Source: Cercozoa sp. M6MM
Lineage: Eukaryota > Protista > Endomyxa: Ascetosporea
Reading direction: 5' to 3' (one strand)
NCBI GenBank assembly: GCA_040357565.1
Contig: JBDODJ010000025.1
DNA: 64,000 bases
Shown: positions 18,716-44,626 of the stretch, one piece after another
Layout of the letters: the number at the start of each line of letters is the position of its first letter
How positions within the stretch are numbered: position 1 is the first letter of the stretch
Program-made: the position numbers and the translations under genes
Notes under the pieces: model-generated
The model's database searches: none
What the model was told of the DNA's origin: nothing
The model's input: only the letters and a program-made list of their open reading frames with translations

Positions 18716-18734
18716 AACTGACGCGGATTTAACG
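18716..18734 (+). repeat. Left target-site duplication (19 bp)
   Basis: Identical to 24648-24666. Confidence 0.9.
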
Positions 18735-19765
18735 TAACAACTGACAATAGGGGCCAGGTCCAATCCATCACGGAGCCAATGCGAACGAATGCACAAAAAC
18801 TGATAGAAAAAGCAAAGCAGAAGATTACATTCAACAAGAGAATAGCCTGCCCCGTGGTGACCAACATGACGAACAGAGGCACAAGCCGAGTGGCAGGTGG
18901 CTTCTACGTCACTGGCATCCAAATTGGAAACGTAGAACCCACCTATCCACCCATGTATATCAAAGATTGTACCACTACCCCCATACCCCTCCAGACCCGA
19001 AACTTCAAGGTGAAACTCACGGATGAAAGACTTGGACGAGTCCGCAGGACCGAAACACTGACATTCAAGCTCCTGGAGACCGAACAAGACTTGGCGAAAG
19101 CACAAACGCCCCTACTCGCAGGCGAAACACTACCGCTAGACTTCACCTCAAAAGAAGCCACAAGCTTGACGAAACTCGCACAAGAGATCTTCGAACAAGC
19201 AGAAAAAGAACGAACCGAAAAGAAACGCCCCAACATCCTGAGCCTGGCCCCGACCAGTCTGTACGACACTCAAGAACCGAGCGAACACGACCAACACCCA
19301 CAAACACAAGAACATCCCACACCCAACACCGCGCTGCCCACTAGCGCACTCCAAACAGAAATGCAACAAAGCACAATGAACGAAATACTCAACCAGGTAA
19401 CCACAAAAAGGAAACACACTCCCCATGCCACAGATCCAGAAATACACTCCTTAAACGTAGCTCAAGGAGATGAGGAACGAAATCTTCGACCTACACATGA
19501 GAATGGGAGAACTCGAACAAGCCGAACACGCAGGTCGCAAGAGAACGAGGAACGAGGCACAACAAGACATCGAACACCACGAAACAGACCCACCACCACC
19601 GAAACGCAACCTGAGCAATATCTCGATGAGCGACATGCGCCGCTCGCTCCCACTAAGAACCGACATGTCACCGAACCAACCGGAAGAGAACCATTTGGGC
19701 TAAACCCGCCAACTAGGCACAACCTGCAAAACCACTACCAAAAATACACCCCAAGTGATGGTTAG
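18735..19765 (+). CDS. LINE ORF1 (5'-truncated, probable frameshift near 19460)
   Basis: Frame is open from the TSD junction to TAG 19765 (first ATG at 18779). No CCHC knuckle visible. The alternative frame 19461-19703 reads as a coiled coil. Confidence 0.7.
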
Positions 19766-22700
19766 AATAGGAGAAAAACGCAACAGAGCCTTGGCTGATA
19801 TACAAGGAGCAGAGAGCGTAAACAACCGCAATAAAAGAACAAGACACGCAGAAAATATCAGAGAAGAGAGAGACCACCCAAACGACGAGATCGAGATACC
19901 AGGTATGAGAGAGATTGGAATAGAAACCTATGAGAGTGATGACAACAATGACAACGATCGTCACATTGATGAGATAGTTATACCCGACATGAGAGAAATA
20001 GGCCTAGAAGCATACATGATAGAACAAGAAGAAATCCTGGAACCTGAGACAGGACAGAAAAGAATAAAAGAACTGTACGAACGCGCAGACAAACGAGTTA
20101 AGCACAGGTGCACCGCAAGACGCACACTCAACGGGGCAATAATACAGCAGGCCTTCAGGCGGGCAAAGATCGGGGCCCTACAGAACCACGCTGAAAAAAG
20201 TACGAAACTACGCATCCTACACCAAAACGTGAACACCTTCAACAAGGAAAAACAACAAGAACTATTGAGCAGCATATACTGCCTACAACCCGAAGAAAGG
20301 CCGGACATCGTATGCTTAAGTGAAACCAGACACAACAACCCACCGCAAAGACTAAACGAATACGCACTGGTCGCCTCCATCGCGCCAAAACTATCCAAAG
20401 AAGACAACAAGACACTCCGAGAAGGCACACTGATATACAGCAAACACAAAGCACTGCTACACATTGTTGGTGCCTGGAACCCAGCAACATCCTCATACAT
20501 CCACCTAAGAGTGGGACAACATAAGAGAACGAGATTCCATCTATGGTACGCTTACATCCACCCAACCGACAGAAACTGCAAGGAACAAATGCAGCAACTG
20601 ACAACTGACTTCAAGGAATTCCACAGCAGAACACAGGAGCCTGGTCTCATTCTTGGCGACCTCAATGCAAAACACGCCAAGTGGTGTGCACATACCAGAG
20701 ATCAAGCTGGATACTCCCAGGAACACGTAGACAACGGTACTACGAGAACCACATCTGCGCGGGCGAACAAGCAAGGCATTGCCCTACAAGAAGCAATAGC
20801 TGAAAATGACTGGGAGATACTCAACAAATACACTCCAACCCACAGCTACAGAGTCCGAGGAGAGGCAGAGGCCAAGCCCAGAACAACGATAGACCTCGCG
20901 ATAGCTGACAGTGTCATCTCAGCACAATCTACAATATCGGTCTACGATCACCTGCACTTCCTATACAGCGACCACCACGCTGTTATGGTCACAGTAGAAC
21001 GAGCAGTGCGTAAACCAAAACACACCATACGGAGAAAGAACTACAAGAAGATAGACCTCCAAAAATACAAAGAACATGAATCGATTCGACTGCTATCACA
21101 AGAGAGAGATGTGGACAACATCGAGCAAATCAATGACACAGTCGAAGACATCACCAAAGCCATGCAGGAAGCCATAGAAGAGGCAACACCCACCAAAATA
21201 ATCACCCAACACTCTTGCCTAGGCATATCGGTCGACTCGATAAAAATCAAGAGGAACACATATAGCACCATGAAACTCATTAAGGAACTGAAAAACAAAA
21301 ATGAAGATGCGTCTGAACTCGAAGCACTCCTCAAAAACATGAGAAAACAACTCAGACAAAGCCTTCGCATTGATAGACAAGCACTATGGCAGGAGAGAGT
21401 GGCCAGACTAAACGCACACACAACAATTGGGGAGACCACTCGACTACTGAGAAACATCAATGACAGAGAAACAAATGGCGCTACCAGAGCCTCAACAATT
21501 GAGGGTGCCTCAGAAGACAAAGCCATCGCAGAGATCTTTGCAGAACACTTACAAAAGAAAACCACACTAGACTGGTCCCAATTCGCAATGTACAATGAAG
21601 TACTCGGAGAGAACAGATTTGCACAACAACACCAAGAGGTGTTACAACAAGCAGCACAACTGCAACAAGCACCAAAACTATGGACGATGGACGAACTGGA
21701 AGCTGCAATCAACACTCTTCCGCCATTCAAGGCACCTGGCAGAGACAAAATCATGAACCACCACATCATACACCTACCAGATGAGACCAAACAACTGCTA
21801 CTGAAGGTCTACAATGCCTGTCTCACACATGGGTACTTCCCGAAGGCATGGAAACACGCAACTATAGTGATGCTACCCAAGCCTGGCAAGGACTGTACAA
21901 AGGCAGCTTCCTACCGACCCATCTCGCTGCTGCCGTGCCTCGGCAAGCTACTGGACAAACTCATGAACGAGAGAGCATCCCAACAAATGAACACACAGTA
22001 TGTATCCAAGTACCAATCTGGGTGGAAACAACACATGTCAACGCTGGACACACTGGCTTACATACAACAGCAGGCAGAAATGGCAAAGAGAGCAGGTGAG
22101 TACATGACAGTCATTAGTCTAGACATCAAAGGCTTCTTCGACAAGCTCCACAAAGAGGGCGCAATCATTGCCCTGTCTAAACATGTGAATGGCGAAGAAC
22201 TGCTACTCATGGAGTCCTTCCTCTCAGACAGAACTATCTCGGTGAGAAGAAACGACACCGAATCAACAGACAAACAAGTCAACGGCAGTACTCCCCAAGG
22301 GGCCATCTGCAGCCCTCTACTCGCAAAGACCTTCCTCGATGACATGCACATACAACTGCAAAGAACAGGAGAACACATGAAACGACACCCCCGAAACTAT
22401 AAAATTAAAGGAGCAGTAACCACTGCACACAGTGTCGGATACGCCGATGACTCATACGTCATAGTAAGGACAACAAAGAGATCAGACATGCAGGAAGCGT
22501 GTAGGCGCCTCCTGGACACAGCCACCACCTGGGCAAAACGCAACGGCATGGAATTTGCACCCACAAAGACTCAGTTCATCCAACTGGGAAAGAAGACTAT
22601 CAGAGACCTCAAAATCAGAATGAAAACACTGTCCCACGGCAACGAGAGAGAAGACATCGAGGAAGTAGACAAAATGAGAATCTTAGGTCTCCTCATAGAC

Positions 22701-24347
22701 AGAAACCTGTCGTACGAGGCGCACGCAGAGCAACTACACCACAAAATCACTCGGAGGATCAACACACTGAAAAGACTGATATACACGAGGTCTGGACTCA
22801 CACAATACCTAGCGGTACAGATCTACAAAGCATGGATACTGTCATGCGCTCGATACGGCATCGCGCTCTGGTGGCACAAAATAGGCAGCACAAAATGGAG
22901 GAGAAAACTCGAAATAACACAACGCACCGCCCTGAGGATCTGCATGAGACTACCCACGAGCTCTCCCAACGAGGCAGTGTACACCATCACCGACACAGGA
23001 ACAATCGAAGAGATGGCAGAACGAGCAGAAGCGACAGAACTAATCAATCACTACGCTAAAGAGAGCACACTGTGTCTACAAACTGACACCACACCAATTT
23101 CCGCTTGGAGAAGAGCAGCCACAAACCGCAAGATCACCGACGCTGAACTGAGCGAAATACCACAAAGAAGGAGAAAGATGCTCGGAAGGATCATCAAGAC
23201 AGTGAACAGACCCAGAGAACACGAGACATGGTCAATACGGAAAATGGATGCTGAACACCACAAGCACAAGTGGCTCCAACTGATACGTGACCTCTCGAAC
23301 AGAGCAGAGATACAACAAGTGTACGCAACTGACGGCAGCCTTGCCGGAAGCGAAGCAGGCTACGGCTGGACATCAGGAAAACCAGTCAATGGAAGGCTAA
23401 GGTCTGGCAATGGAAAAATCACCAACGCGACTATCTATGATGCAGAAAGAGTTGCCATAATGCAATGCATCAAACACGCTAAAGAAAAAGGAGAAACCCG
23501 TATCGCACTCCTGATTGACAATAAAGGAACGATCTTGCACCTGACAACACCTCAAAAAACAGAGATGGATGAGATTGATGCACAATTGAAAGAACTAACA
23601 AAGGACATGCACATCACGGTACACTGGGTACCATCACACATCGACATTCACCTCAACGAACTAGCAGACAAAGAAGCAAAGAAAGGAAGGAACAACCACA
23701 ACAGGAGAAACTGGATCAAAATAAACAAAGACCACAAGAAACTGAAAAAGCAGACCCGAAACAGCAAAAACAATGAACCGCAACGCCCTCTCAGAAGGGC
23801 CAGAGCCAGAGCTCTACAGAAAACACACGTCAGAAGCCCCTGGAAACATATCAGGAACTCAAACAAACTCCTCAGAATAGCCAAAGAGCGCAAACTCAGC
23901 ATCGCAGACATCCGCACACTCTCAAGATTCCTCTGCAACAGACTTGGAAGCTTCAAGTACTACAACTACGCCCAAATACCACGAAAGTGCAATGAATGCA
24001 ATGCCAGAGGCAGACTCAGGACTCCCAACTGCAAGGGATGCAAACAAAGACTACAAAAACGGGAAGTAAGCGAGTGCCCCGACTGCGCGGGTACCTGGGA
24101 AAATGCAGAAGACACTCTCGACACGTACCACCGATTGCTGGAATGCAAGGTAACGGAAGCTATCAGAAACAACACCAATGCGGCTCAGTGGCGCACAATT
24201 GAAGACATACTGGCCAACCCTGAGAACCTAGCAACACTCAACAGAATGCATCAAGGCACCAAGATCTCCTGGGACGAGGAAGCAACTGTCGAAGGACAAC
24301 TAGCCTCCCAGCAGGCACCGGACCGAGAGGTCCCCGACATAGACTAG
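19758..24347 (+). CDS. LINE ORF2: AP endonuclease, reverse transcriptase, RNase H, zinc finger
   Basis: APE: HQNVN, CLSET, GDLNAKH, TIDL, SDHH. RT: KAPGRD, YRPISLL, LDIKGFFD, PQGAICSP, YADD. RNase H: TDGS, DAE, IDN, WVPSH, NELAD. C-terminal CPDC..HRLLEC. Confidence 0.97.
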   Translation: MVRIGEKRNRALADIQGAESVNNRNKRTRHAENIREERDHPNDEIEIPGMREIGIETYESDDNNDNDRHIDEIVIPDMREIGLEAYMIEQEEILEPETGQKRIKELYERADKRVKHRCTARRTLNGAIIQQAFRRAKIGALQNHAEKSTKLRILHQNVNTFNKEKQQELLSSIYCLQPEERPDIVCLSETRHNNPPQRLNEYALVASIAPKLSKEDNKTLREGTLIYSKHKALLHIVGAWNPATSSYIHLRVGQHKRTRFHLWYAYIHPTDRNCKEQMQQLTTDFKEFHSRTQEPGLILGDLNAKHAKWCAHTRDQAGYSQEHVDNGTTRTTSARANKQGIALQEAIAENDWEILNKYTPTHSYRVRGEAEAKPRTTIDLAIADSVISAQSTISVYDHLHFLYSDHHAVMVTVERAVRKPKHTIRRKNYKKIDLQKYKEHESIRLLSQERDVDNIEQINDTVEDITKAMQEAIEEATPTKIITQHSCLGISVDSIKIKRNTYSTMKLIKELKNKNEDASELEALLKNMRKQLRQSLRIDRQALWQERVARLNAHTTIGETTRLLRNINDRETNGATRASTIEGASEDKAIAEIFAEHLQKKTTLDWSQFAMYNEVLGENRFAQQHQEVLQQAAQLQQAPKLWTMDELEAAINTLPPFKAPGRDKIMNHHIIHLPDETKQLLLKVYNACLTHGYFPKAWKHATIVMLPKPGKDCTKAASYRPISLLPCLGKLLDKLMNERASQQMNTQYVSKYQSGWKQHMSTLDTLAYIQQQAEMAKRAGEYMTVISLDIKGFFDKLHKEGAIIALSKHVNGEELLLMESFLSDRTISVRRNDTESTDKQVNGSTPQGAICSPLLAKTFLDDMHIQLQRTGEHMKRHPRNYKIKGAVTTAHSVGYADDSYVIVRTTKRSDMQEACRRLLDTATTWAKRNGMEFAPTKTQFIQLGKKTIRDLKIRMKTLSHGNEREDIEEVDKMRILGLLIDRNLSYEAHAEQLHHKITRRINTLKRLIYTRSGLTQYLAVQIYKAWILSCARYGIALWWHKIGSTKWRRKLEITQRTALRICMRLPTSSPNEAVYTITDTGTIEEMAERAEATELINHYAKESTLCLQTDTTPISAWRRAATNRKITDAELSEIPQRRRKMLGRIIKTVNRPREHETWSIRKMDAEHHKHKWLQLIRDLSNRAEIQQVYATDGSLAGSEAGYGWTSGKPVNGRLRSGNGKITNATIYDAERVAIMQCIKHAKEKGETRIALLIDNKGTILHLTTPQKTEMDEIDAQLKELTKDMHITVHWVPSHIDIHLNELADKEAKKGRNNHNRRNWIKINKDHKKLKKQTRNSKNNEPQRPLRRARARALQKTHVRSPWKHIRNSNKLLRIAKERKLSIADIRTLSRFLCNRLGSFKYYNYAQIPRKCNECNARGRLRTPNCKGCKQRLQKREVSECPDCAGTWENAEDTLDTYHRLLECKVTEAIRNNTNAAQWRTIEDILANPENLATLNRMHQGTKISWDEEATVEGQLASQQAPDREVPDID

Positions 24348-24647
24348 GCCACCACTCACAGCAGTGGTGGCCCTAAGTCTATGTCCGTTTGTTTGTTTTG
24401 TTTAGGTATCGAGTGGAGAGACGGGAGGACGACGACGGGACGACCCGACGCCGCCTGCGACGCCTCTCTACTTGTAGCCCGCTACCTGCACCAACCATGA
24501 AGTCGACTTCGATGTCTGGGGAACGTCAAAAGGGGAGCTGCATGGTCCTACCCTAAGCGGGCGGTAGACACGGCCATGCTCTTGTGACCCACCCCAGACT
24601 GGTGCAGGGGAACTACGTAGTTGGTTTCCTAGAAGACTCAACTAACT

Positions 24648-24666
24648 AACTGACGCGGATTTAACG
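24648..24666 (+). repeat. Right target-site duplication (19 bp)
   Basis: Identical to 18716-18734. Confidence 0.9.
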
Positions 24667-24699
24667 CAACGCGACGAATGCGGTCAGAAGTAACGAAGT

Positions 24700-43166: not shown

Positions 43167-44158
43167 ATGTACTTCGACCTGTGCGTTGCCGATGACGGCA
43201 ACCTGGCGACCCGTCGCGCCTTTGCTGAGATGGCAATCCGATGTACTATTTTTGCTGTCGCGTTTCTCGTGTCTGACCCAGTGAATTAAATATGTGTTTG
43301 AGCAGTGGGCTACGACGGCCTGGCATTTGAGACAGTTCTGACGGGCCGTTTGCAGAAGAATCACCGCAGCAACTTTGAAGCAGTGCAAGTGGAGGTGCCG
43401 AAAGAAAGTGATTTGGAGCTTCAGAGCGGTTTTCTTCGACTGAGCGATCGAAAGCGACGTTTGCGTCAGTTTTCGCGACTCACAGTGGTGCTTCGCGATG
43501 CAGCACAGGCGAGCTCGCTCTCGCAGGCCAAGCAAGCGATCGAAAGCTACGATCTCGTGGCCATGCAGCCAACTGATGAACGTACTTTTGTCCAGGCATG
43601 TCAGAACATCGATTGCGACGTGATCTCACTCGATATGGGCGCGAAACGTCTCTTCAAGCTGAAGTTTCGTGCCATCTCGGCTGCCTTGCAGCGTGGTGTG
43701 TACTTTGAAGTGAAACTCGCGCCTGCTCTCGACGAGCAAAACCGCGTTAACTTTGTTGCCAACGTTTCGACACTGCTGCGACTCACGAGAGGCAAGCAAC
43801 TCGTGTTCTCCTCGGGCGCGGATGCGCCGATCGCGATGCGGAGTCCTCATTCGGTAGTTCTTTTTCGCTTTGAGTGTTTTGCTGATCAAAGCTTCTGTGT
43901 GCTCAGTTGATGGCTCTGGCATCGCTGTTTGGCGCCAAGCGCAACCTCGCGCAAACTTGCGTGTCGGACACGTCGCACTCGCTGCTGGTGCGTGCCGCCT
44001 CCAGGAGGACGACCAAGCAGCTCTTTGATGCACGTCCTGCCTCGCACCAGACCGACGAGTGGAAGCGAGTGCCCTCCGCTGCCAAGCCGGAACACGAGCG
44101 GCCTGCCGCCGACGTGGAAGACGAGCCGCCTCAGAAGAAGCAGCGCACGTCCAAGTAG
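43167..44158 (+). CDS. RPP30: RNase P/MRP subunit p30
   Basis: MYFDLCV..AIRLGYDGLA, RQFSRLTVVL, YDLVAMQPTDERTFVQAC, DVISLD, RGVYFEV, LVFSSGA..MRSP. Confidence 0.93.
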
Positions 44159-44181
44159 CGTGGTTAGTGAGTTAGTTTGGT

Positions 44182-44338
44182 CTAAGAAACCAACGGTGTG
44201 CACTAACCTTGAAGAAGGTAATCTGGGAACTTCACAAGCGATGGCCTACCCTAAGCAAGCGGTAGATTACCGTAAGGCCATTCGCTTGTGACCCACACCA
44301 GGCATGGTTCCTTAGTAGATTGAACTGACTAACTGACG
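44182..44338 (+). mobile_element. Short element homologous to the LINE 3' end (SINE-like or severely truncated related LINE)
   Basis: Shares ordered blocks with 24487-24655 (TGCAC.AACC.TGAAG, TCTGGG, CCTACCCTAAGC..GCGGTAGA, GGCCAT, CTTGTGACCCAC.CCAG, AACT-type tail). Confidence 0.8.
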
Positions 44339-44626
44339 TTATAAACTGCCGAGGTACTCGACAAGAACCTCGCCCGACAGTGTGCTAGCATCACATGCAT
44401 GGAGTGGCAAAGGGAAAGTCGATGATGGGAGCGTCATGGATGTGACCGACAAATATCATAAATACAGTTTTCAAAGCAAGGGGGGCAAGGCGGCAAGGCC
44501 CCTGGGGCTACAGTTGTCGAGACTATCGTATCAAGATGACCAAAGGAGGGAGGTGACTTCAGTTGTCGCGAATGTCGGTCCACGCAGTGCGCACCTGTCA
44601 CATATGTACATGTGATGTGTATTTAA

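Follow-up and report, generated by a model that had tools for sequence, protein, structure and literature searches.

Retrotransposition of LINEs of the stringent type requires that the ORF2 protein bind a cognate 3′ stem-loop, as described for eel UnaL2 and for zebrafish ZfL2-1 and ZfL2-2 of the L2 clade (PMC4176376). UnaSINE1 is a SINE with a LINE-derived tail (PMC4176376, PMC3747384), and in R2 it is a structured 3′ UTR RNA that is bound by the R2 protein (PMC11194090).

We have analysed the 3′ end of a LINE lying in a stretch of 64,000 nt (hereafter the window) from a genome of 23.6 Mb in 2235 contigs, together with a related sequence some 20 kb downstream, which a first-pass annotation of the window had taken to be the SINE partner of the LINE. 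The features concerned are as follows.

18739-24651, + strand: full-length LINE, identified by its domains and the flanking target-site duplication
18779-19765, + strand: LINE ORF1
19755-24347, + strand: LINE ORF2 (1530 aa), with endonuclease, reverse transcriptase and RNase H domains
24348-24484, + strand: 5′ portion of the 3′ UTR, in which the lineages differ more than they do in the module
24485-24609, + strand: structured 3′ module, defined by minimum free energy, pair counts on 84-100 copies and covariance model R1
24486-24489, + strand: hot spot at which retrocopies begin, with its peak at G24488, 3 bp inside helix H1
24610-24651, + strand: conserved 3′ tail ending in (AACT)n, common to old and young copies
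44163-44194, − strand: inverted LINE-tail fragment, read from the sequence by comparison with the tail
44199-44338, + strand: solitary old retrocopy (module plus tail), identified by alignment, its single-copy status, a match to R1 and a 5′ boundary at the hot spot

The stringent-type LINEs offer the nearest functional parallel. As in UnaL2 and the ZfL2 elements, a conserved hairpin stands just 5′ of a short tandem-repeat tail at the extreme 3′ end, poly(A) is absent, this arrangement is kept in all retrocopies and compensatory change preserves the stems. Those elements, however, have a single short stem-loop, and the module described here is much larger, with five helices and a side hairpin in about 125 nt; its LINE has an RNase H domain, no protein found is more than 23-26% identical to it, and the module-bearing copies sampled did not include a partner SINE. 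R2 too has a multi-helix structured 3′ UTR, the template-selection signal for target-primed reverse transcription, but R2 is site-specific and has a restriction-like endonuclease, and there is no sequence or Rfam match between the two. HDV-like self-cleaving ribozymes occur in R2, L1Tc, Baggins and RTE elements, where they lie in the 5′ UTR, adopt a double-pseudoknot fold and set the 5′ end of the RNA at their own edge. The hot spot for 5′ ends reported below resembles such an end defined at the edge of a structure; the module, in contrast, lies in the 3′ UTR, has no double pseudoknot and has no Rfam match.

Results and Discussion

Anatomy and insertion of the LINE

The reverse transcriptase (RVT_1, 8e-26) and endonuclease (Exo_endo_phos, 2e-9) domains of ORF2 were matched in Pfam, while the RNase_H match was sub-threshold (2e-4, 21.9 bits against a cut-off of 25.8). 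The closest solved reverse transcriptase is that of human L1 ORF2p (E 1e-17), and the relatives returned by protein database search, none of them named, were at most 23-26% identical. A target-site duplication of 23 nt with one mismatch (18716-18738 and 24648-24670) can be read on either side of the element, and this duplication, along with the APE, reverse transcriptase and RNase H domains, identifies it as a LINE. Genes in this genome appear, from the scarcity of long ORFs, to be split by introns.

The 3′ end of the LINE has no poly(A) but a short tandem repeat, (AACT)n, and the same terminus is found in all copies; it closes a tail of 42 nt that directly follows the hairpin of about 125 nt. 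The insertion target begins with AACTGAC and overlaps the (AACT)n terminus, an overlap that would fit priming by microhomology. A literature search for (AACT)n-tailed LINEs returned nothing specific.

Predicted fold of the 3′ module

The 125-nt module (24485-24609) is predicted to fold with a minimum free energy of −58.3 kcal/mol (z = −4.3) into a single long irregular hairpin in which H1, a side hairpin, H2, H2b, H3 and H4 are nested. In the LINE of the window, the predicted H1 (9 bp) is CCTGCACCA/TGGTGCAGG (in RNA letters CCUGCACCA/UGGUGCAGG), H2 (8 bp) is (G)TCTGGGG/CCCCAGA(C) (GUCUGGGG/CCCCAGAC), H3 (8 bp) is GCATGGTC/GGCCATGC (GCAUGGUC/GGCCAUGC) and H4 (5 bp) is CTACC/GGTAG (CUACC/GGUAG) with a loop of 10 nt. 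The pairings that the first-pass annotation had picked out, H3, H4 with its 10-nt loop, and H2, all occur in the predicted folds of both the LINE end and 44199-44338. Predicted folds of a young copy, two old copies and the solitary copy gave z-scores of −4.0 to −4.3, and in decayed old copies the folds of the inner helices vary (z −0.7 to −2.2). The consensus given by RNAalifold for a first alignment of eight sequences was different and poorly supported, and the single-sequence fold projected onto larger alignments was preferred to it.

Rfam returned no family, self-cleaving ribozymes (HDV-like, hatchet, hammerhead, twister and others) included, either for the whole window at gathering thresholds or for the two stretches at E up to 10, in agreement with the earlier statement that the module matched no recognised motif; ARAGORN found no tRNA in the LINE 3′ UTR.

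One detail of H3 (feature 24540-24547) separates the LINE of the window from most young copies. At 24541 it has C (GCAUGG, forming a C-G pair), whereas they, L126-L131 for example, have U (GUAUGG, a U-G pair), and this one-sided change makes H3 stronger in the newest copies.

Copy number and two lineages of the LINE 3′ end

The genome (23.6 Mb) contains well over 150 copies of the LINE 3′ end, which fall into a young lineage and one or more older ones. A first look with the 186-nt LINE end gave 393 candidates genome-wide, and the 40 of these that were scored were 94-100% identical to it. An 18-mer of the young type has 112 exact copies in the genome, a pattern of the old type from which the young type is excluded picks out 28 diverged copies, and a 20-mer from the tail has 132 exact copies; the reversed control gave none in each case. 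The absence of reversed matches to the young-type and old-type patterns shows that the similarity is not due to chance. Covariance model R1 has at least 150 matches in the genome. The further copies that a genome search was to disclose were thus found. In other species, a scan of metagenomes with the core pattern yielded 11 contigs, none of which matches R1, and these are therefore chance matches.

Copies are 5′-truncated at many positions, yet all have one common tail. In old and young copies alike the tail is identical in kind, divergence starts after ...AACTAACTA, and the flanks are unrelated. Most old copies also possess H1, in the form CCTGTACCA/TGGTACAGG (also written CCUGUACCA/UGGUACAGG). 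This helix had been annotated as an addition peculiar to the LINE; its presence in the older copies means that it is ancestral.

Conservation and covariation of the module

Pairs were counted on three alignments, of 19 copies, of 84 copies aligned by MAFFT and hence blind to structure, and of 100 distinct copies fitted to the covariance model. On the first pass with 19 copies, 77% of cells were paired, against 36-45% when partners were slid, and this percentage was reached by 10 of 500 shuffles. In the 84-copy alignment the figure was 79.0%, against 36-42% for slid partners, and the covariation score and the number of double-change cells were reached by none of 500 shuffles. Measures robust to the relatedness of the copies were not significant on this alignment (double-change pairs were reached by 47 and pair types by 13 of 500 shuffles). 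With the 100 copies fitted to the model, 84.6% of cells were paired, against 41-49% for slid partners; four of five measures were reached by none of 500 shuffles and the fifth by two. The signal in the 84-copy alignment resides in two pairs, one in H1 (38 copies with C-G, 17 with U-A and 11 with U-G) and one in H4 (43 copies with U-A, 23 with C-G and five with U-G).

As most copies are dead and decaying neutrally, what they contribute to such alignments is mainly noise. For each paired column we also compared the majority state in one main lineage with that in the other. Between the lineages there are two double compensatory substitutions, in one H1 and one H4 pair, one change that preserves a wobble pair, and a coordinated indel of a single C-G pair in H2 (GUC-UGGGG/CCCCA-GAC versus GUCCUGGGG/CCCCAGGAC). 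The side hairpin has been remodelled, and three positions are paired in the young lineage only. In simulations, two or more compensated doubles arose by chance with P of about 0.01-0.03, and an equal number of random substitutions broke 6-7 pairs, whereas the fixed changes break none in the young lineage. Some copies, L135, L160 and L174 among them, have mixed diagnostic states, and this suggests that change was stepwise, with G-U pairs as intermediates; later decay could, however, account for some of the U-G states.

Six old copies that extend into the upstream 3′ UTR were compared with the young LINE. Identity is 71-78% at 24421-24484 but 79-88% in the module, and 81-88% in the tail, which five of the six retain; the conservation of module and tail between lineages thus exceeds that of the neighbouring 3′ UTR by about 10 points.

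These data bear on whether the fold has any function in retrotransposition. The likeness among copies might reflect common descent, with helices that are incidental or that serve RNA stability, 3′-end formation or control of translation. Sequence conservation does explain most of the pairing, since shuffled partners in the 84-copy alignment were still 77.6% paired against the observed 79.0%, and there are only about three compensatory events. We nevertheless regard this explanation as unlikely, because two compensated pairs and a paired indel are among the changes fixed between lineages, none of which breaks a pair of the young lineage, because module and tail are better conserved than the neighbouring UTR, and because a folding z-score of about −4 is found in four independent copies. 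As judged from the aligned copies, structural selection is real, though resting on few independent events, and the covariation is narrow.

The annotated claim that the LINE ends in a conserved multi-helix structure with compensatory changes is therefore borne out by the pair counts, the two compensated pairs and the one-base-pair indel. Two of its particulars stand in part: the variation in H2, TCTGGGG/CCCCAGA, is present, but the difference between lineages, against CCTGGGG/CCCCAGG, is an indel of one base pair; and the covariation that was to be tested is seen in those same events but does not reach significance by the relatedness-robust measures on the structure-blind alignment.

A candidate 3′ recognition element

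The explanation that we favour, with a probability of roughly 0.65, is that module (24485-24609) and tail (24610-24651) together constitute the cis-acting 3′ element of a stringent-type LINE, acting in recognition and initiation; as a function for the module itself, a recognition signal for the reverse transcriptase is the most plausible. According to this model, the LINE RNA would fold into the long irregular hairpin and be recognised there by the ORF2 protein of the LINE, and the terminal (AACT)n would anneal to a nicked AACT-like target, at which target-primed reverse transcription would start. Selection acting on active master copies would have kept the helices while their sequences changed. 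The sequence at 44199-44338 would be a by-product of this process, namely an old retrocopy from an earlier lineage of the same LINE family, truncated where 5′ ends preferentially fall, at the base of the hairpin, and later shortened by 21 nt.

If this is correct, a large structured 3′ recognition element is present in a divergent LINE (23-26% protein identity) of a small eukaryotic genome, and stepwise compensatory evolution (C-G, U-G, U-A) is visible across the fossil copies of the LINE itself. No new class of element is revealed.

A hot spot for retrocopy 5′ ends

A new observation of this study is that the 5′ ends of retrocopies accumulate at the base of the hairpin. Of 60 copies sampled solely on the basis of an 18-mer within the module, 52 have a length of about 180 nt at most, and 13 start at 24486-24489 (P = 5e-8; 5e-6 after correction). 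When full-module copies are considered, 19-21 of 84, about a quarter, start at G24488; they belong to both lineages, and the solitary copy starts there as well. The start reads GCACCAA in the young and GTACCAA in the old lineage. Loci of this kind include L068, L081, L082, L102, L104, L122 and L129-L141; their upstream flanks are mutually unrelated, and in L068, L102, L122, L104 and L092 a target-site duplication directly adjoins the start. Within the young lineage, the short hot-spot copies sampled have no diagnostic substitutions compared with long LINE copies, indicating that long and short copies derive from the same LINE RNAs and that the latter are no lineage of their own.

How the hot spot arises may be considered at the level of either cDNA or RNA. 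The minus-strand DNA of a hot-spot copy is predicted to fold with its 3′ end closing the hairpin, which would be consistent with snap-back of the cDNA or ejection of the template; alternatively, the 5′ end may be that of an RNA generated by cleavage or by an internal start. The hairpin could then define a discrete RNA or cDNA unit, either because the transcript is cut or started 5′ of G24488, giving a module-only RNA of about 165 nt for the LINE to copy, or because the minus-strand cDNA snaps shut and ejects the template. We think it distinctly unlikely that the hairpin defines such a unit, but were it so, the LINE would regularly yield SINE-sized offspring from its own 3′ UTR with no separate SINE gene.

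A narrower proposal is that a processing site just 5′ of G24488, self-cleaving or cut by a host RNase, frees an RNA of about 165 nt, comprising module and tail, that is then reverse-transcribed. The pile-up of 5′ ends at one position in both lineages is what such a site would produce, and ribozymes that cut at their own 5′ edge do occur in other LINEs, HDV-like ones at 5′ ends. This proposal we consider very improbable: even at E up to 10 there is no Rfam ribozyme family, the topology is that of a simple nested hairpin and not an HDV-like double pseudoknot, the starts are spread over 24486-24489, and severing the 3′ UTR from the coding RNA would damage the LINE. Catalysis by the module thus finds no support, the hot spot being the sole hint of it and having other explanations. 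Whatever its cause, the hot spot provides a lead on how RNA or cDNA structure may shape 5′ truncation, and on SINE-sized copies arising directly from a LINE.

The sequence at 44199-44338 is a retrocopy of the LINE 3′ end

The alignment reported by the first-pass annotation, of the last ~170 nt of the LINE with 44199-44338, is confirmed: 24470-24655 and 44199-44338 are homologous, with a mean column identity of 77% and long identical blocks. The solitary copy matches R1 with 76.7 bits at 44182-44330, starts at the hot spot (G44200) and is predicted to fold into an extended helix of 14 bp plus CTGG/CCAG (z = −4.0). It has suffered a deletion of 21 nt that removed the 3′ arm of H1, and the annotated lack of this helix is accounted for by that loss.

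The stretch 44150-44345 is single-copy in the genome; what else it matches are parts of old LINE ends, with 72-86% identity. The old retrocopies with which it groups number at least 28, are mostly 5′-truncated and have the same tail. UnaSINE1 is likewise an element that includes LINE 3′ sequence, and 44199-44338 is short and ends in such sequence, but UnaSINE1 has a pol III promoter head, many copies and a lineage of its own, whereas 44199-44338 has none of these. Among about 180 sampled copies, all from module-bearing sites, there is no common non-LINE head. The annotated LINE/SINE partnership, in which 44199-44338 and the short copies would be a non-autonomous lineage with a borrowed 3′ module that uses the reverse transcriptase of the LINE, is barely tenable, and for 44199-44338 itself largely refuted, because, even though many short copies of about 165 nt do have a discrete 5′ end at G24488, 44199-44338 is neither multi-copy nor equipped with a tRNA, 5S or 7SL head (Rfam on 44100-44400 at E up to 10; ARAGORN on the LINE 3′ UTR), many old 5′-truncated LINE ends are like it, sequences upstream of short copies are unrelated with target-site duplications abutting the start, and the short copies follow both LINE lineages without diagnostic substitutions that would mark a partner lineage among the sampled copies. 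On these sequence comparisons, we interpret 44199-44338 as a fossil retrocopy of the LINE 3′ end and not a SINE.

The surroundings of the solitary copy deserve brief description. The gene for RNase P subunit p30 (43305-43910, + strand; Pfam PF01876, E 4e-39) lies just upstream, and the copy is probably situated in the 3′ region of this gene. The inverted tail fragment at 44163-44194 abuts its 5′ end, giving a ‘two-tailed’ fold-back arrangement in which, in the predicted fold of 44170-44345, the inverted and direct tails pair (z = −5.5). A short ACCGUA-type insertion follows H4 in the solitary copy (44265-44275), where it is predicted to form an alternative small hairpin, and in at least two other old copies (L063, L184); it may be the mark of an old sub-lineage or a recurrent duplication.

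Nested and adjacent LINE ends

Among about 180 loci, LINE ends are often nested or adjacent (L019, L029, L078, L085, L111, L136, L142 and others), with 11 tandem, five head-to-head and three tail-to-tail arrangements within 60 nt. An enrichment of head-to-head (‘two-tailed’) junctions through snap-back was considered and rejected on these counts, such junctions not being enriched. The frequency of nested and adjacent ends suggests that new copies were inserted within or next to earlier ones or their AACT-rich tails.
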